This document shows, one piece after another, positions 14,850 to 63,195 of a stretch of DNA of 64,000 bases. The stretch lies in NCBI RefSeq assembly GCF_902713615.1, contig NC_052158.1:33459990-33523989 (forward strand). The letters are read 5' to 3'. The position numbers and the translations under genes were made by a program. The notes beneath the pieces were generated by a model, which saw only the letters and a list, made by a program, of their open reading frames with translations, ran no database searches and was not told the DNA's origin. Source of the DNA: Scyliorhinus canicula. Its lineage: Eukaryota. Position 1 is the stretch's first letter. Every line of letters starts with the position of its first letter.

Positions 14850-17800
14850 CGGGCAGACAACAGTGAGAGGTTTGGCTGGAACGTTGAAACAGTCTTGTGC
14901 TTCACAGACAGTCTCTTCCAGCATGCAGGCGGGGGATGTGCAAGCTGCAAGGCCCCAGATACAGGAAGTGATGAATTTTATCAAGAAGGAATTCCATAAA
15001 CAGAGGAAACAAATGCATGATGATCATACAAAGGCCATTGCAGAAGCTGTGGCACCCCTGAAGAGTATTTTGGAGCGGATGGAGAAGTGCTTGGAGGTGC
15101 AGGAGAAATGGGAGTGATCTCGGACCACAGCGATCGTGTGGTGGCTCTGGATGCGGAGGTGGGGCTCCTAGGAGACCTTTGTAAAATGGTAAGGGCAGAG
15201 GTTGAGGAGCAGGAGAATATCTGGAGATGACAGAACCTGCGAAGAGTGGGCCCGCCTGAAGGAGTGGAAGCTGTCAGAGCAACGACGTACACCTCGAGGA
15301 TTCTGGCAGAACTGGTGGCAAAAACATGTGCTAGATAAGGCACCTGAAGTGGACCGAGTGCATAGGTCTCTGAGGCAAAGGCCTAGAGCTGTGGAGCCGC
15401 CGCCGAAGGTGATAGTGAGACTCTATAAATTTGTGGAGAAAGAGAAAAGTCTACGGTCGGCCAGGGAGAAGTGTAGCTGCGGCTGAGAGGGAAATAACGT
15501 CCGGATTTATCAGGACATCGGAGCCGAGTTGGCAAAACGGCGGGAAGGTTTCAAGAAGGCCAAGGCAGTGCTGTTCCGACTGCAGATGAAGTTTGGGGTA
15601 CTGTACCCAGCGAAATGATGGGAGACGTTTGGAGGCCGGGAGTATAATTTCGAGGCTCCAGAAGCGGCCGAAGACTTCAGTAAAGAGCATAAACTGGGGG
15701 AGAACTGACTGGACAATGCTTGGGAAAGGGGGTGCTGGCACTATGTAATGGTCCGGAGCATGTTTGAAGTGGGAGCATGGATGGGGGGATTTTCGCCATT
15801 TTTGTGTGTGGGGGGGTTCTGTTCAATGTTGAGATTCTAAGAAGTTGCAGGGATGAAAAGTTTATGTGGGGATGGATGTCAAATCCACCCCCCCCCCCCC
15901 CCCGGCTTATGGGACTGTTTGTGTTTAACATCTGTTCGTTTGCTTTTGGAGGAGGCTAGCTCCTGGAGAAGTCGTTGTTTGGGTGGGGGAGGGTAAGGCC
16001 AGCAGGATGCCTTCTTCTTTGAGCTGAGGAGTGGGGGGAGAGAGGGAGCGGGAGGTCCTTAGGATGTGTCTTTGGGAAGGGTCAGCGGCGCTAGCAGGTT
16101 ATGCTGGTGAACGGAAGTAAGGTGGTGGGGGAGAAGGCCAGGAGGGAAGGTCGGGGGGGGGAGGGGAATGGGGGTGGGGGAAATAAGGGGAGGGGAAAAG
16201 CGGAGTGGGTCGGGGTTTCTGCGTCGTGGCAGGGGATGAGTGATGACATGGTCAAGGGCGAGGAAAGGGTCCATCTGGGATGGGCTAGGTGCAGAGTGGA
16301 ATTAAAGGGGCAGGAGCTAAGTGGGGAAGATGATGGACGTTAGAGGGTATTGGAGGCACAAGCCTCTGGTAAGGTTGGTCACATGGAACGTGCGGGGACT
16401 GGATGGGCTGGTTTAAATGTCACGGGTGTTCGCGCACCTCAGGAGCTTGAAAGCGGGGGTTGTCATTTTGCAGGGGACACACTTCCATGAGAAGGAGCAG
16501 GCTACATTAAGGAAAGGGTGGGTCTGGCAGGATTTTCACTCGGGTTTGATTTGAAATCGAGGAGTTTTGCGATTTTCATGAGCACACAAATGGGATTTGT
16601 GAGTTCGAAGGAGTTGAGGGATCCGGATGGAAAATATTTGATTGTGAGTGGGGTATTGGAAGGGGCACCAGTAGTCCTGGTAAATGTGTATGCCCGAAAT
16701 TCGAATGTGTGGGTTTTATGAAGGGGTTGCTGGCAGCAAATCCGGATTTGGCAACGTACCAGTTGATCATGGGACGAAATTATAACTGTGACCTGGAGCG
16801 AAGGGTAAATAGATCAAGCCCCAGGTTGAAGGGTAGGGCACGAATGGCAAGGGAGCTGGGGGAGGGGGGGGGGGTTATGGAGAGGATGGGTATGGTGGAT
16901 CGATGGCGCTTTCAGAACCCAGGGGGAAGGGAATATTCCTTCTTTTCAAACGTCTATAAGGTGTATTCGAGGATTGATTACTTTGTAGTGAGTCGGGAGA
17001 TTAAGGTTGGGATGGAGTGGGTGGAGTATGCGGCGATAGTTAGCTCGGACCATGCACCCCACTTGCTGGATATTCGGTTCAGTACGGCATGAGAGCAGAG
17101 GCCGGAGTGGAGGTTTGACTCGGGGTTGCCGGCAGATGGAGGTTTCTCTGATACGGTGTGGTTGGCAATTAGGGATTATGTGGAGTTCAATCAGAATGGA
17201 GAGGTGTCGGCGGGCATTTTTTGGGAAGCACTGAAGGCAGTGTTCCGGGGAGAAATTATCTAATTAACCGATCGTGCGAGTAAAGAAAGGAGGGTGGAAC
17301 ATGGCCGTTTAGTGAGCGAAATAGTGGAGGTGGATAGGGAATATTCCACGGTGCCCACCGTGGAGGGATTGACGAGGACAGAAAAGATGCAGGGACAATT
17401 TGACAGACTGACAACGGGGAGGTCGGAATGGTAACTGGGGTGCAATACGAGTATGGGAAGAAAGTGAGCCGCATGCTGGCACACCAGCTGAGGAGTCAGG
17501 CTGCGTCCAGGGAAATATTTAAGATCCGGACTGGTGTCAGAGCCAGGGAAGATAAATGAGGCATTTAGAGAGTATTACCAAGGACTTTATTTTTTTTAAA
17601 GAAATTTAGATTACCCAATTATTTTTTCCAATTAAGGGGCAATTTAGCGTGGCCAATCCACCTATTCTGCACATTTTTTTGGGTTGTGGGGGCGAAACCC
17701 ATGCAGACACGGGGAGAATGTGCAAACTCCACACGGACAGTGACCCAGAGCCGGGATCGAACCTGGGACCTCAGCGCCGTGAGGCGGTTGTGCTAACCAC

Positions 17801-32490: not shown

Positions 32491-32763
32491 CCAGTTAATT
32501 ATCAATTAATCTGAGACATGCATGTAACGATAACTATTAACATCAAGTAATTAACTATTAATTCCTAACGATTGGTAAATAAATTATCATGCCAGTTGAA
32601 TCCTGGTTAGAACAAAATTCTTCCTGACAAAGATACTGAGCTTTTTAAGAGCGTTCAATGTTCTTATTGATGGAACTTCAATTTGCAACTAATTGTATTT
32701 TAAATAGAACATTTGTGTTTCCTGATCTCTTTTCTTTCCTGTTTCGCATTTGTGCCTCGTCAG

Positions 32764-34136
32764 TGCTCACGACATATCAGCGGGAAAGGCTAGCAAACTC
32801 CACAGAGCTAAACGAATTTCGCAACAACCTCACAGGCTTCTTTGATACTGAAAGAGTGAGTTCTTACAAAATGGTCGAAGCGGTTTTCATTGTAATTGTG
32901 ACAGTTGCTTTAAGCTTGTTGACTATCATTGGAAATATTCTGGTCATAGTTTCTATCAAAGTAAACAGACATTTGCAAACTATGAACAACTATTTTATTT
33001 TCAGCTTGGCCTGTGCTGATTTAATTATTGGTGTATTCTCTATGAATCTATACACCACTTACATCGTCATTGGCTCCTGGCCATTGGGCCCAGTGGTTTG
33101 TGATTTGTGGCTTGCTCTAGATTATGTTGTCAGTAATGCATCTGCCATGAACCTCCTGGTCATCAGCTTTGACCGTTACTTCTGCGTGACAAAGCCCCTC
33201 AGCTACCCCGTGAGGAGAACAGCGAAGATGGCAGGAATGATGATCGCAGCTGCCTGGGTGCTTTCGTTTATCTTGTGGGCTCCTGCCATTCTCTTCTGGC
33301 AGTTCATTGTAGGGGAGCGCACAGTCAGTGAGGGTGAATGTTACGTACAATTCTTCTCAAATCCAGCCATCACGTTTGGCACGGCTGTAGCTGCCTTTTA
33401 TCTCCCTGTGTCAATAATGATGACTTTGTATGTACAAATAGCTCGTGCCAGCAAATGTCGAATGAAAGACAATAAAGAAGAGCGTGAATCAAGCAATGAC
33501 AGCATTTCACCCAGTCTAGTGAAAGACAAGAGAACGAAGCTGAACAACAATATCATACCAGGTGTTCCTGATGGTTTTTCACAAGTCAAACTACAGAATG
33601 ATATAGTAGCAGGAGAAATAATAATTAGTAATTGTGAGAAAGAAGATAAGGAGCTCCCCAATGCGTCAAATTACTCCAGCGTACTCCCATCAAAACCAAA
33701 GCCGACTGGGACGAAACAAAGGAGCATAGCTCTTTATATGACGCAAACCTGCTCCATGACGCGCAGCTCTAAACTCTCCTGCATAAAGATAGTTAAAGAT
33801 AGCGAGAGCAGAGCAGAAAATAAGATCATTACACTGTACAATCCTTCTGTGAAGAAGAGGACAGGGGCTGTGTCCCGTGAGAAGAAGGTGACAAAGACCA
33901 TCCTGGCTATACTTCTGATATTTATCATTACCTGGACCCCATACAACGTCATGGTGCTCATTGACACCTTCTGCTCAACCTGTGTCCCCAGCACGGTCTG
34001 GACTATTGCATACTGGCTCTGTTACCTTAACAGTACCATCAACCCAGCCTGCTATGCACTCTGTAATGCTACATTTAAGAAAACTTTCAAGCATCTTCTG
34101 TTGTGTCAGTATAAGAAAATTGGTGCAACAAGATAA
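32764..34136 (+). CDS. CHRM2: Muscarinic acetylcholine receptor M2-like, copy 1 (main coding exon; the ORF track starts it at 32658)
   Basis: Intact 7TM with [88 protein letters not shown] and C-terminal YKKIGATR. M2-type ICL3 (SPSLV..NNN). May be a paralog rather than the true ortholog. Confidence 0.95.
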
Positions 34137-54054: not shown

Positions 54055-54284
54055 TTTTTCTTATTTTTATAAATTTAGTGTACCCAATTCATTATTTCCA
54101 ATTAAGGGGCAATTTCGCGTGGCCAATCCACCTAGCCTGCAGATCTTTGGGTTGTGGGGGCGAAACCCACGCAAATTCGGGGAGAATGTGCAAACTCCAC
54201 ACGGAGAGTTACCCAGAACTGGGATCGAACGTGGAACCTCGGCGCACTGAGGCTGCAGGGCTAACCCATTGCGCCTCCGATTCC
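54055..54284 (-). mobile_element. HE1-head SINE with A-rich tail
   Basis: 15-bp TSD CCCTCATGCCTTCAT at 54040-54054 and 54285-54299. Confidence 0.9.
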
Positions 54285-54879
54285 CCCTCATGCCTTCATA
54301 ACTTCCTTCATGTAATTTTAACACCCTGGCTTCAGATTGAACTTGCCCACTTTGAATCACATTGTAAAATTCGACCACACTGTCGTCACTCATCCCGAAA
54401 GGTTATTGTTCTCTTAGTGCGCTTGGTTACTGGGTTACATGGATAGGGTTGACATGTGGGCTTGAGTTAGGTGCTCTTCCCAAGGGTCGGTGCAGACTTG
54501 ATAGGCCGAATGGCCTCCTGTTGCACTGTAAATTCTATATTGAACAGCTAGATTATTAATTAGCCATTTACGTTCTTTCTGTGAGGGAAGAAAAACACTT
54601 GAGCATCCCTTCTTCTTTCATCACGTCTCTCGGTGATATGGATTTTCAGTCTCAGATAAGTTTGTGATCTGGCTACATGAAAATAAAAAAATCAGTGGAT
54701 TGAAAGTATTCTTCGCTTAACAGGTTAGTATTTCGAAGGAAAAATATGTTTCACCGGGAAATATTGGATTGTTGTGTCAAAAAGTCTGCGAGACATGTTT
54801 GTAGTCAATTCATTTGACATCTTATTTAATGTTCTACATTTAGTACGTGTCAGTGATGTCTGAACATCAGAAGGGAGTG

Positions 54880-56271
54880 ATGGAAAACTCAGCAGAGGTA
54901 AATGAATCTCTCACCAATCTTACAGGCGGGTTTGACACTGAAGGAGGGTATCCTTACACCACGGTCGAAGTGGTCTTCGTTGTAATTGTGACAGGAGGTT
55001 TCAGCGTGATGACAATTATTGGAAACATTCTAGTCATTGCTTCTATCACATTAAACAGACAATTGCAAACTATTAATAACTACTTTATTTTCAGCTTGGC
55101 CTGTGCTGATTTAATTATTGGTTTGTTCTCCATGAATCTATACACTGTATACACTGTTACTGGCTACTGGCCGATGGGCACCGTGTTATGCGATTTGTGG
55201 CTTGCTGTAGATTATGTTGCCAGTAGTGCTTCTGGCCTGAACCTGCTGATCATCAGCTTTGACCGCTACTTCTGTGTGACAAAGCCCCTCAGCTATCCCG
55301 TGAAAAGAACAGCGAAAGTGGCAGGGATGATGATCGGAGCAGCTTGGGTGCTGGCATTTTTCCTTTGGGTACCGGCCATTCTCTTCTGGCAGTTCATCGT
55401 AGGAAAGCGAACTGTTGGTGACGGCGAATGTTATGTGCAGTTCCTCTCAAATCAGGCTGTCATTTTTGTCACTGCAATTGCTGCCTTCTATCTTCCTGTT
55501 CTCATCATGGTGATTTTGTATGTGCAAATATCTCGGGCCAGCAGGAGTCGTGTGAAGGAGGATATAAAGGAGACTGAATCAAACAAGTTTACAGTTGTTC
55601 GGAGTCTCGGGCGGAGGAAAAGAATGAAACAGAATAAGAATATACCAAATGGTACCGATAGATTGGCACAGGTCAAAAAGCAAAATGACAAAATAACTGG
55701 GGCAATGACAATTAATACTTGTGGCCACGCAGCTGATAAGGATCTGCCCAATAAGTCAACCTCCGGAAATATGGTCGAATTTAACCAGACAGATGGAGGG
55801 ACAACACAGGGGAGAATAATAAATGTCTGTAATGATGAAAGCCGTTTCAGGACGAATAATTCCGAACTCTCTATCATAACGATAGTTGGCAAATGCCAGA
55901 AAATCGCCGACTGTGACGGTACGGCAAAAATAGCATCAGACATCAATGGCAAGAATGGGAATGCCAGGGAGGTCACAGCACCCACAGTGTTGAAAATAAG
56001 GGGCGCTGTATCCCGAGGAGAAAAAGTTACCCGAACTATCTTGGCTATTCTCCTCGCTTTTATCATCACCTTGAGCCCATACTTCTTCATGGTACTCATT
56101 AGCACCATGTGTTCAATCTGTGTCCCCTACACAGCCTGGACTATTGGATACTGGCTCGTTTACATCAACAGTACCGTCAATCCAGCCTGTTACGCATTGT
56201 GTAATCCCACCTTCAAGAAAACTTTCAAGCATCTTATCCTGTGTCAGTACAAGTCCATCGGTAGAGCATGA
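54880..56271 (+). CDS. CHRM2: Muscarinic acetylcholine receptor M2-like, copy 2, with divergent binding pocket (463 aa; alternative ATG at 54856)
   Basis: Single-exon intact 7TM ORF: [89 protein letters not shown]; a paralog rather than a canonical M2. Confidence 0.93.
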
Positions 56272-58938: not shown

Positions 58939-59135
58939 TATTTAAAAAAATAAAAATAAATTTAGAGTAGCCAATTATTTTTTTCCAATTAAGTGGCAAT
59001 TTAGCGTGGCCAATCCACCTAACCTGCACATCTTTGGGTTGTGGGGGTGAGACCCACGCAGACATGGGGAGAATGTGCAAACGCCACACGGACAGTGACG
59101 CAGGGCCGGGATTCGAACCCGGGTCCTCAGCGCCG
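58939..59135 (-). mobile_element. 5'-truncated HE1-head SINE with A-rich tail
   Basis: 19-bp TSD CAGTGATCAAATCATTCAT at 58920-58938 and 59136-59154. Confidence 0.9.
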
Positions 59136-60777
59136 CAGTGATCAAATCATTCATAAAATGTCCTCACGTGCTTCGCTACCACTGAAGTCAAACGAACAGG
59201 ACCCCAGTTCTCCATTACTCCCCTTCCTCCATTCTTAAATGTTGACGTTGCATTGGCTAAGTTCATGTCAACAGACACCTTTCCACAAAGTAAGCCATGT
59301 TGGAAGACAATCACCAATGTGTCCACCTGGAGTACTTACAAAATTGTTCTCTTTTTGAATGGATCAACATGCCATAGAAGAATGCAATGGAGGTTAGCCA
59401 CCATGATTCCAGAGACAGTCGGATTGGTCAATGTGGAGGGCTTGAGGACAATAGGCCACAAATCTCGAGAGTTCAGAAGATTAAAATGATATTTAGATTT
59501 GCAGAAACATTCTCACCGTGCTCGATAACGTATATTGAAGGATATTTCCGATGGCTTGGGGTGTGGGCATCAGAGGAACAGTTTCATAATCAGTGGGAGA
59601 CCATGTCGGACTTAATAGGGATGACTTTCGTCACTCACAGCAAGTGCATTGGAGGTACAGTCGTGGATTATATTAAAGAGAGACAACGATTTCTAGATAT
59701 AAAATATACCAAGGGGTATAGGGATTGCGCAGGAAAAGAACATTGAGGCAGAAGACTAGCCAAAATCAAATTGAATGCAGGAGAAGGCTAGAGGCGCCGA
59801 GTGGCCTGTGCCTCCTTATATGTCCTAGGTTCCATTGAATAGACAGCATCAAAAAAGAAAATGCTGCTGAACTTTTCTTAGCGTTCCTCTTAATACAGTA
59901 ACGGAGATTGGACTTAGGCCCCATCTAAGTAGTTTAACTTCCTCTTTTACTGAACAGTCAATCGCAGTAACATTGTCTATATACATTGTAATTACTACCA
60001 ATGCAAGGTAATTGCAGTGCAAAAGGAAAGAAAAATAAGGCTGGATCCTCCAGTCTGCCAGCCGTGTGCTTCTCTGCGGCCCAAGGATCGCTGCTGATCC
60101 GAGTCTCTCCTCCTACCATTTGCCATGGAGTTCCCATTGATGCCACCCCACACAGACGTGAAACCCGCAGGTAGAGGGGGGCGTACAAAGGAAAAAGAGA
60201 ATCCCACGAACTGAATAATTCAGTCCGTAAATAAAGCCCCGAAGTGGCTAGCCCGGACGAATAACACTGTCACCCACTGATTGCTGAAATGCACTCTTCT
60301 GTGAAATTGAATGGAAGATTTCCATCTCAAATCATGTCTAGGGATTCGAAACATTTGTAGGACTTGTCTTTTGTTGAAGCCCCTGACACTTGTCTGAGCT
60401 GCTGCTTTAAACACATTTGTCTGAGGCAGTAAATGTGAGGGAAGGGTAAGTGAAAAAGTAACCTCATGATTGCGTGCCTTTTGGTTTACCCGCTATTCCA
60501 GTGGTGGGAGGGAGGATGCCCCACCTTGTCAGTGGGGGTGGAGAGGAGCAAAATGCCGCAATACCACGTAGGGTTTCCCGAAGGAATCTTGGTACGATCC
60601 TGCACTGCGTCCAGTTGATAGTAAGCACTTCTGCCACTGTGGTGCAAGAATGGAATATTTGAGGCAAGCGTGCCAAACTCGTTTTGTCCTTCATTCTCCA
60701 TTCTCCACCCATCGAGAATGCTGATCAGAGAGGCGCTCAAAGGAGAATCCACATCCCTACAGGTTATCACTGCTCAA

Positions 60778-61696: not shown

Positions 61697-63195
61697 TAGA
61701 AATAACATAGAACATCGAAAAATACAGTACAGAACAGGCCCTTCAGCCCACCATGATGTGCCAAACCTTTGTCCAAGATTAGTCATAGATTATCATAGAA
61801 TTTGCAGTGCAGAAGGAGGCCACTCGGCCCATCGAGTCTGCACTGGCTCTTGGAAAGAGCGCCCTACCCGAGGTCCACACCTCCACCCTATCCCCATAAC
61901 CCAGTAACCCCACCCAACACTAAGGGCAATTTTGGACACCAAGGGAAATTTATCATGGGCAATCCGCCTAACCTGCACATCTTTGGATTGTGGGAGGAAA
62001 CCAGAGCACCCGGAGGAAACCCACGCGCACACGGGGAGGATGTGCAGATTCCGCACAGACAGCGACACAAGGTGGAATAGAACATGGGACGCTGGAGCTG
62101 TGAAGCAATTGTGCTACCCACAATGTTAACGTGCTGCCCTTAAGAACAAATTCATCTACACTCCATTATTCTACCATAAGCCATTTACCTATCCAATAGC
62201 CGCTTGAAGGTCCCTAATGTTTCCGACTCAACTACTTCCACAGACAGTGCATACCATGCCCCCACTCTGGGTAAAGAACCTGCCTCTGACATCCCCCATA
62301 TATCTCCCACCATTCACCTTAAATTTATGTTCCCTTGTAATGGTTTGTTCCATCCGGGGAAAAATGTCTCTGACTGTCTACTCTATCAATTCCCTTGACC
62401 ATTTTATAAACCTCTATCATTCCGCCCCTCATCCTTCTACGTTCTAATGAGAAAAGGCCTAACACCCTCAACCTTTCCTCGTAAGACCTATTCTCCATTC
62501 CAGTCAACATCCTGGTAAATCTCCTTTGCACATATTCCAAAGCTTCCACATCCTTCCTAAAATGAGGTGACCAGAACTGCACACAGTACTCCAAATGTGG
62601 CCTTACCAAGGTTTTGTACAGCTGCATCATCTCCTCACGGTTCTTAAATTCAATCCCTCTGCTAATGAACGCTAGCAAACCATAGGCCTTCTTCACAGCT
62701 CTATACACTTGAGTGGAAACTTTCAAAGATCTATGAACATAGACCCCAAGATCTCTCTGCTCCTCCACATTGCTAAGAACCCTACCGTTAACCCTGTATT
62801 CCGCATTCATATTTCTCCTTCCAAAATGGACAACCTCACACTTGTCAGGGTTAAACTCCATCTGCCACTTCTCAGCCCAGCTCTGCATCCTATCTATGTC
62901 TCTTTGCAGCCGACAACAGCCCTCCTCACTATCCACAACTCCACCTATCTTCGTTTCGCCTGCAAATTTACTGACCCACCCTTCAACTCCCTCATCCAAG
63001 TCATTAATGAAAATCACAAACAGCAGAGGACCTGGAACTGATGCCTGAGGTACGCCACTGATAACTGGGCACCAGGCTGAATATTTGCCATCCACCACCA
63101 CTCTGACTTCAATTGGTTAACCGGTTCGTTATCCAACTGGCCAAATTCCCCACTATTCCATGCCTCCTTACTTTCTGCATGAGCCTACCATGGGG
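61697..63195 (-). mobile_element. CR1 LINE RT plus tail, with an HE1 SINE (61783-62139, -) inserted in the 3' UTR
   Basis: 258-aa open RT/C-terminal frame (62325-63101): SGVPQASVPGPLLF..SKFAGETK..LVRPHLEYCVQFW. Confidence 0.95.

Follow-up and report, generated by a model that had tools for sequence, protein, structure and literature searches.

An intact gene descended from the M2 muscarinic acetylcholine receptor, with a rewritten ligand pocket, in the catshark Scyliorhinus canicula

The orthosteric site of muscarinic acetylcholine receptors is a classic example of extreme conservation, with no difference between M1 and M5, and because of that identity subtype-selective orthosteric drugs are hard to make. 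In this site, D3.32 holds the ammonium head of the ligand within an aromatic cage formed by Y3.33, W6.48, Y6.51, Y7.39 and Y7.43. Here we analyse a gene of the catshark Scyliorhinus canicula, referred to as copy 2, in which part of the site has been replaced. The gene lies in a 64,000-nucleotide stretch of contig NC_052158.1 (forward-strand positions 33,459,990 to 33,523,989; the window), downstream of a paralogue, copy 1. Descended from the M2 acetylcholine receptor, copy 2 is intact and has been maintained by selection.

Two kinds of described system offer a comparison. The engineered muscarinic receptors known as DREADDs, which carry Y3.33C and A5.46G, are insensitive to acetylcholine (ACh) and respond to synthetic ligands, showing that few orthosteric substitutions can swap specificity with G-protein coupling intact. 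Copy 2, unlike DREADDs, keeps Y3.33 and A5.46; its changes are natural and lie at other positions. The chemosensory TAARs and TARLs, which derive from an HTR4-like brain amine receptor, form a clustered, lineage-specific family in which D3.32 has been kept and the pocket diversified (PMC8890504). Work on the muscarinic site itself places W6.48 in the amine cage, where its mutation reduces orthosteric affinity, and has N6.52 hydrogen-bonding the ester or isoxazoline of the ligand, an interaction on which antagonists depend critically but agonists less (PMC10938299). Activation of the M3 receptor takes at least a charged ammonium, and tetramethylammonium alone activates it, although with about 600-fold less potency than ACh or carbachol (PMC11793849).

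Copy 2 is an intact receptor gene

Copy 2 is a complete, single-exon coding sequence of 463 codons followed by TGA (54880–56271 (+)), and its frame is open throughout, as the initial annotation of the window had reported. An identical protein is on record at LR744042.1:33,514,869-33,516,260 in S. canicula assembly GCA_902713615.2, on a chromosome of 163,470,629 bp, and runs of N are absent from the whole window. The protein matches the Pfam profile 7tm_1 (PF00001) with an E value of 1.7e-60. Its closest solved structure is human M2 (PDB 6u1n_R, E 2.6e-161), with M4 next and then M3, M1 and M5; this ranking and the nesting of copy 2 among elasmobranch M2 sequences, described below, bear out the proposed M2 derivation. 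With the 7tm_1 match, seven transmembrane (TM) helices, DRY and NPxxY, copy 2 has the features of a class-A receptor. In place of the toggle motif (CWxP in class A, TWxP in muscarinic receptors) it has TLSP, but the missing W6.48 leaves class-A membership intact because many class-A receptors do without this residue.

Copy 2 is 58–65% identical to canonical M2 (CHRM2, and the shark protein that we call M2a), and the likeness extends to the single-exon seven-transmembrane architecture with a long intracellular loop 3 (ICL3; 149 amino acids in copy 2), D3.32 and the tyrosine lid, DRY, NPxxY, the disulfides, the N-terminal glycosylation sequons, ICL2, VTIL and helix 8. The cytoplasmic end of TM6 is intact and reads VTRTIL (56026–56043 (+)), which we take to be the VTIL motif known from M2/M3 chimera work to set Gi/o selectivity in M2 and M4; with this motif and an M2-type ICL2, copy 2 has the sequence characters of the Gi/o-coupled M2/M4 subgroup. 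An AlphaFold2 model built from a 32-sequence family alignment is of low confidence (mean pLDDT 41.8, pTM 0.30) and shows seven helices plus helix 8; because these scores are too low to judge pocket geometry or to search by fold, we take only the helix layout from it.

A rewritten orthosteric pocket

Residues were numbered as in human M2 after copy 2 had been aligned with M2 or M2-like proteins from vertebrates (55 sequences), with the LALDYV and ITW(A/T)PYN motifs of turtle M2, which is collinear with human M2, as anchors, and codons were read directly. All six substitutions listed in the initial annotation are found at their codons: N108S (3.37; AGT, 55225), V111G (3.40; GGC, 55234), T187I (5.39; ATT, 55462), W400L (6.48; TTG, 56071), N404F (6.52; TTC, 56083) and C429V (7.42; GTT, 56158). 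To these we add F181L in extracellular loop 2 (ECL2), G189V, T401S, V405F and N410S. Equally, the residues that had been described as kept are present: D103, the lid of Y104, Y403 and Y426, DRY, NPxxY and the TM3–ECL2 cysteines (C96/C176). Copy 2 also retains S107, W155, T190, A191, A194, F195, W422 and Y430, and the ECL3 cysteine pair, so that both disulfides are preserved.

The changes fall in four segments on the plus strand. In TM3 (55210–55236), D3.32 (55210), Y3.33 and S3.36 are kept next to N3.37S and V3.40G, and the DRY motif follows intact (55261–55269). The ECL2/TM5 segment (55444–55470) carries F181L (55444), T5.39I and G5.41V (55468), with T5.42, A5.43, A5.46 and F5.47 of TM5 kept. 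In TM6 (56071–56103), W6.48L, N6.52F, V6.53F (56086) and N6.58S (56101) surround the retained P6.50 and Y6.51. TM7 (56149–56193) keeps Y7.39, Y7.43 and an intact NPxxY (56179–56193) and is altered at C7.42V. Overall, 11 of 18 pocket residues are the same as in S. canicula M2a and 7 are replaced (N3.37, V3.40, F181, T5.39, W6.48, N6.52 and C7.42). Residue by residue, therefore, copy 2 lacks the orthosteric identity of M1–M5, and in this it differs from canonical M2.

The congener S. torazame has an orthologue of copy 2 (P0002) with 88% protein identity, and sequencing error is excluded because the two proteins agree at every one of the 18 pocket positions. The initial annotation had argued against error from the two-base codon changes. 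Its conclusion stands, whereas the size of the changes is less telling than it seemed: residues that could be one-step intermediates occur in relatives, F429 (TTT) in P0003 and Y404 and H404 in other members.

Purifying selection on copy 2

Copy 2 is under purifying selection. Between S. canicula and S. torazame, the ratio of nonsynonymous to synonymous substitution rates (dN/dS, or ω) is 0.405 by the NG86 method (bootstrap 0.28–0.62) and 0.52 by YN00 or maximum likelihood (ML). For the 283 codons of the seven-transmembrane core the ratio is 0.204 (bootstrap 0.12–0.37), with none of 500 bootstrap resamples reaching 1; for the N terminus, ICL3 and tail together it is 0.71 (bootstrap 0.37–1.36). 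Branch estimates were obtained by a non-negative least-squares fit to NG86 distances among nine genes. They give ω of 0.33 on the copy 2 stem (core, 0.20) and 0.20 on the S. torazame terminal branch (core, 0.16), and core values of 0.01–0.34 on every family branch with usable dS. The stem that separates copy 2 and its relative P0004 from the rest is the sole branch above 1 (ω 1.1–1.6), which we treat as noise because its dS is only about 0.02.

The frame of copy 2 is open in both Scyliorhinus species. Under simulated neutral decay at the observed dS, a frame remains free of stops with a probability of 0.05 in a single lineage and 0.005 along the path that joins the two species. An incipient pseudogene had been predicted to show dN/dS near 1 evenly across the open reading frame (ORF); copy 2 shows neither this nor a disrupted frame.

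Pocket divergence followed by conservation

To compare the pocket with the remainder of the receptor, we chose 18 orthosteric positions before testing; they derive from M2 structures and overlap with those given in PMC10938299. Mapped on the tree, all 18 are unchanged in canonical M2 between sharks and mammals. Among S. canicula paralogue pairs, 31% of pocket sites differ, compared with 19% of other TM sites. Orthologue pairs behave in the opposite way: pooled, and bearing in mind that the pairs are not independent, they differ at 3 of 180 pocket sites against 157 of 1839 other TM sites (p = 2.6e-4). A comparison of pocket and scaffold dN/dS, of the kind suggested in the initial annotation, puts pocket ω at 0.35 on deep branches and 0.04 on recent S. 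canicula/S. torazame branches, and ω at other TM codons at 0.18 on deep and recent branches alike; none of these values exceeds 1.

Parsimony steps are more frequent in the extracellular than in the intracellular halves of the TM helices (3.22 versus 2.08, p = 4e-4), and the signalling surfaces (ICL2, the VTRTIL segment and helix 8) are nearly unchanged in the family. The pattern is that ligand sites diverged once the genes had duplicated and that each new site was then conserved. The pocket and selection evidence together are thus those of a functional receptor whose new pocket has become fixed, not of a decaying copy.

An M2-like gene family in galeomorph sharks

Copy 2 belongs to a multigene family of galeomorph sharks that is arranged in tandem and evolves by birth and death. 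RefSeq already carries these elasmobranch gene models as ‘muscarinic acetylcholine receptor M2-like’. Besides copies 1 and 2, S. canicula has at least four such proteins (P0004, P0007, P0026 and P0074); the protein search also found at least five in S. torazame, at least nine in Mustelus asterias, at least five in Cetorhinus maximus and several in Rhincodon, Stegostoma, Chiloscyllium and Hemiscyllium, and a family profile search, for which the best match is shark M2a, added more. This amounts to about 5–9 annotated M2-derived paralogues per well-sampled shark species; family size and taxonomic range are lower bounds, as the best 120 matches per protein search were considered. At least six of the S. 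canicula genes form an array on LR744042.1 between 31.49 and 33.55 Mb: P0074 (31.49 Mb, +), P0007 (33.40 Mb, −), P0026 (33.45 Mb, −), copy 1 (33.49 Mb, +), copy 2 (33.515 Mb, +) and P0004 (33.549 Mb, +).

The canonical S. canicula receptor, M2a (XP_038637214.1), lies on a separate chromosome (98 Mb), so that copy 2 differs from it in belonging to a multi-copy, tandemly arrayed family elsewhere in the genome. The two also differ in rate: M2a proteins are at least 90% identical across shark orders (Hexanchiformes, Pristiophoriformes, Heterodontiformes, Lamniformes, Orectolobiformes and Carcharhiniformes), whereas copy 2 has only 88% identity between congeners.

A phylogeny of 65 rows and 464 columns (IQ-TREE, LG+C20+F+G4 PMSF, rooted on M3/M5) branches in the order lamprey M4-like, M4 and then the M2 clade. 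Copy 2 falls inside the elasmobranch M2 clade (support 98/100), with M4, lamprey M4-like, M3 and M5 outside. Nested within it is a shark M2-like clade of at least 33 genes (99/95) whose members, among the sequences in the tree, come only from Carcharhiniformes, Lamniformes and Orectolobiformes. Because of this nesting, the M2-like duplication is later than the split from bony vertebrates, at a node that the tree does not fix exactly: in the best tree the clade adjoins S. canicula M2a, and an approximately unbiased test does not reject monophyly of shark M2a (p = 0.125). The sister of copy 2 is S. torazame P0002 (100/99), followed by P0004/P0003 (100/97) and then Mustelus P0005 (100/97). Gene order in S. 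torazame mirrors that of the window, with P0032 lying 22 kb upstream of P0002 on the same strand, and the 19 kb surrounding copy 2 are collinear between the two species at about 85–90% identity.

We searched the full-text literature for duplicated or expanded M2-like genes in cartilaginous fishes, sharks among them, and no paper on this family or its pocket changes came up. The eNeuro 2018 paper on vertebrate muscarinic receptor evolution has cartilaginous fishes outside its analysis, and the catshark ‘Sensory Shark’ paper does not mention CHRM genes in its main text. The family is apparently undescribed in the literature.

Pocket changes across the family

The rewritten pocket reported for copy 2 is real and conserved in the sister species, but most of it is not specific to this gene. 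S108, G111, L181, F404 and V429 are common to copy 2, P0004 and Mustelus P0005; I187 and S410 are common to copy 2 and P0004/P0003; and F404 is also present in P0007, P0026, P0074 and further subclades. F6.52 is the consensus residue of monoamine receptors. Among the tabulated family sequences, W400L is private to the copy 2 lineage, in which both Scyliorhinus species have it. W6.48 has been lost independently elsewhere, to L in the P0074/Mustelus subclade and in skate P0022, to F in two Cetorhinus genes and to A in Chiloscyllium P0118.

The most altered pocket is that of P0026 (S. canicula, about 33.45 Mb) and Mustelus P0027, which share all of their changes: S3.36C, V3.40S, W4.57F, A5.46G, F6.44V, N6.52F, Y7.39F and C7.42A. 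Cetorhinus P0015 has a subset of them (V3.40S, A5.46G, F6.44V and N6.52F). A5.46G, one of the two DREADD mutations, therefore occurs naturally in P0026, P0027 and P0015. Against this variation, the cation-binding aspartate and tyrosine lid are conserved in 32 of 33 family members; D103 is altered once in the M2-like clade, to G in one Cetorhinus gene, and Y104, T190, F195 and Y430 are unchanged throughout. Position 3.40 is occupied by small residues (G/S/A/C) family-wide.

Rays and skates (Hypanus, Hemitrygon, Mobula and Rhinoraja) likewise have M2 duplicates with altered pockets, including N6.52S or H, A5.43G, N3.37Y or S, S3.36G and F6.44C, as well as W6.48L in Rhinoraja P0022. These sets differ from the shark family in forming separate clades with shorter branches and fewer pocket changes, and in mostly keeping W6.48 and C7.42. 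The ray and skate M2-like proteins include P0017, P0021, P0024, P0031, P0034, P0037 and P0083 (Hypanus and Hemitrygon) and P0022. These independent duplications suggest that diversification of the M2 pocket is a recurrent elasmobranch theme.

Surroundings of copy 2 and neighbouring copies

The start codon of copy 2 (54880) has the context GTGATGG, which is kept in S. torazame; an upstream in-frame ATG at 54856 is not. A pyrimidine-rich tract (54805–54843 (+)) that ends in AG (54842–54843), 37 bp upstream of the ATG, is a putative 3′ splice acceptor, at which, as in CHRM2 genes, a 5′-untranslated exon may be spliced to the coding one. It is conserved with S. torazame, 38 of its 39 bases being the same up to the AG, beyond which conservation falls off. 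Directly upstream of the tract, S. torazame has about 187 bp of extra sequence (L001:9739-9926, against window positions ~54803–54805), and further upstream conservation returns at about 90%. We dismissed an antisense ORF at 55488–56108 (−) as a by-product of the copy 2 coding frame.

Copy 1 lies 22 kb upstream on the same strand (approximately 32790–34136 (+)) and is 60% identical to copy 2. Its pocket is near-canonical: among the positions tabulated, only V111A and N410D differ. Copy 1 pairs with S. torazame P0032 in the tree (100/100), but its start reads AGG CTA where P0032 has the ancestral ATG ATG; from there the open frame extends another 44 codons upstream and reaches an ATG at 32658. 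The searched protein database held no match to copy 1. Copy 1 nevertheless does not look dead, because its dN/dS against S. torazame is 0.22.

Two older-assembly contigs of S. torazame (191 kb and 120 kb) encode truncated copy-2-like proteins, P0019 and P0044, that are 88–89% identical to P0002. P0044 has an ECL2 Cys-to-Arg change, W7.35S (W422S) and Y7.43H (Y430H); P0019 has a one-residue deletion in TM6 and W to L in GYWL. Judged by this damage, both are probable pseudogenes, additional genes of the copy 2 type that are particular to this lineage.

Scanning the window with Rfam and for tRNAs yielded nothing of relevance. A dispersed repeat of about 180–210 bp, with copies 80–89% identical, occurs at 54057–54266, 58954–59135, 17586–17798 and other sites in the window, and one of these copies precedes the start codon of copy 2 by about 600 bp. 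The repeat is probably a tRNA-derived short interspersed element, because a tRNA-Ile-like structure identified by ARAGORN at 59097–59186 (−) partially overlaps the copy at 58954–59135. About 6 kb downstream of copy 2, a 258-amino-acid ORF fragment (62325–63101 (−)) looks reverse-transcriptase-like by eye and probably comes from a LINE-type retroelement.

Ligand preference and alternative explanations

Copy 2 arose by duplication of elasmobranch M2 (M2a), and we propose that it would retain a site for a small ammonium head group, made up of D3.32 with Y3.33, Y6.51, Y7.39, Y7.43 and W4.57. Signalling would most likely proceed through Gi/o, given that DRY, NPxxY, ICL2, the VTIL motif and helix 8 are kept. 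The polar partners of the acetyl ester appear to be lost, as the hydrogen-bond partner N6.52, the cage floor W6.48, T5.39 and C7.42 are replaced, and L6.48, F6.52, F6.53, V7.42, I5.39 and V5.41 would make the pocket more hydrophobic. The likeliest consequence is that sensitivity to ACh and atropine-type ligands has been lost or much reduced, with the receptor retuned to another small amine or quaternary ammonium. From its residues, copy 2 is probably a functional aminergic G-protein-coupled receptor with a shifted ligand preference, a reading that we favour with some reservation.

Several observations weigh against such a shift. The initial annotation had proposed a retuned receptor; an intact, M2-derived gene under purifying selection, with its cation site and G-protein surfaces kept, agrees with that proposal, but ω > 1 was not detected on any well-supported branch or for pocket codons, and positive selection or adaptive retuning is therefore not demonstrated. 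In the M2-like clade as a whole the pocket evolves no faster than other TM sites (2.83 versus 2.64 parsimony steps per site, p = 0.52), and a Fisher test of changes within and between orthogroups across the whole family is not significant (p = 0.14). The pooled comparisons rest on pairs that are not independent of one another. Constraint is somewhat relaxed on the S. canicula terminal branch (ω 0.54 overall; core, 0.24), and the pattern of pocket change could alternatively reflect relaxation followed by new constraint. ACh activation of copy 2 may survive because N6.52 matters less for agonists, and W6.48L and V3.40G lie in the activation switch, so that signalling could be impaired or constitutively altered.

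The most serious competing explanation is that copy 2 is still an ACh receptor, a subfunctionalised M2 paralogue with a shifted potency, kinetics or antagonist profile in a particular tissue. Copy 2 retains D3.32 and all but one of the five cage aromatics, N6.52 weighs less for agonists than for antagonists (PMC10938299), and a muscarinic receptor is activated even by tetramethylammonium (PMC11793849). The pocket of the adjacent copy 1 is essentially canonical, from which it follows that the M2-like family began as ACh receptors. Yet the seven ACh-site residues changed in copy 2 are invariant in M2 from sharks to mammals, and W6.48, reported to be necessary for orthosteric affinity (PMC10938299), is gone; moreover, the paralogues have fixed different, long-conserved pockets, which is hard to explain with one common ligand. 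We regard continued service as an ACh receptor as unlikely, although far from negligible. 

A ligand-independent or modulatory role, with copy 2 as a constitutively active receptor, a non-signalling partner or a decoy (for example, in an M2a heteromer), would fit the fact that W6.48L in the toggle and V3.40G in the P-I-F connector strike two core microswitches, and that residues at 3.40 are small family-wide. This seems very unlikely, as the aspartate and tyrosine lid persist in all but one of the family members and the new pocket residues are conserved between orthologues, which would be unexpected were ligand binding irrelevant. Hardest of all to credit is an incipient pseudogene, a redundant duplicate drifting with its ORF open by chance. 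The overall dN/dS of 0.40 is high for an aminergic receptor, as is the value on the S. canicula terminal branch, and gene death occurs in the family (P0019 and P0044 of S. torazame, and the lost start codon of copy 1). However, the low core dN/dS with no bootstrap resample at 1, the pocket shared in full with the orthologue, the small chance of two open frames and the conserved start-codon context and putative splice acceptor all speak against decay, and we consider this account extremely improbable.

Implications

In its clustered multigene birth-and-death turnover with ligand-site diversification, the shark M2-like family resembles TAARs. The analogy is evolutionary only: the parent gene is M2 and not HTR4, the TAAR fingerprint motif is absent and the family is small, at about 6–9 genes per species. 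The catshark has 3 TAAR, 2 TARL and 2 OR plus 6 OR-like genes (PMC11979771), and its sensory genome is described as dominated by V2Rs, the repertoires of OR, TAAR, TARL and ORA genes being tiny. With TAAR, TARL and OR genes so few (PMC11979771), catsharks could conceivably have an unfilled niche for amine sensing. By analogy with TAARs, galeomorph sharks and, independently, rays might have turned M2 into sensors of amines or quaternary ammonium compounds, with copy 2 as one tuned member, although we hold this broader scenario to be improbable. More speculatively, such sensors would serve chemosensation, the role raised as a possibility in the initial annotation, or the internal sensing of methylamines typical of elasmobranchs (trimethylamine (TMA), choline or betaine-type compounds).

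Should the copies prove to be ordinary ACh receptors after all, the finding would shrink to an unusual lineage-specific gene expansion. The shark family constitutes a natural mutagenesis series that bears on what the muscarinic scaffold tolerates and on routes for shifting specificity, with W6.48 and N6.52 repeatedly lost despite a kept cation site and G-protein interface. If the sensor scenario is true, the family would possibly add a second example of a transmitter receptor that gave rise to a multigene family of sensors, and would be a candidate answer to how sharks poor in ORs and TAARs detect amines.

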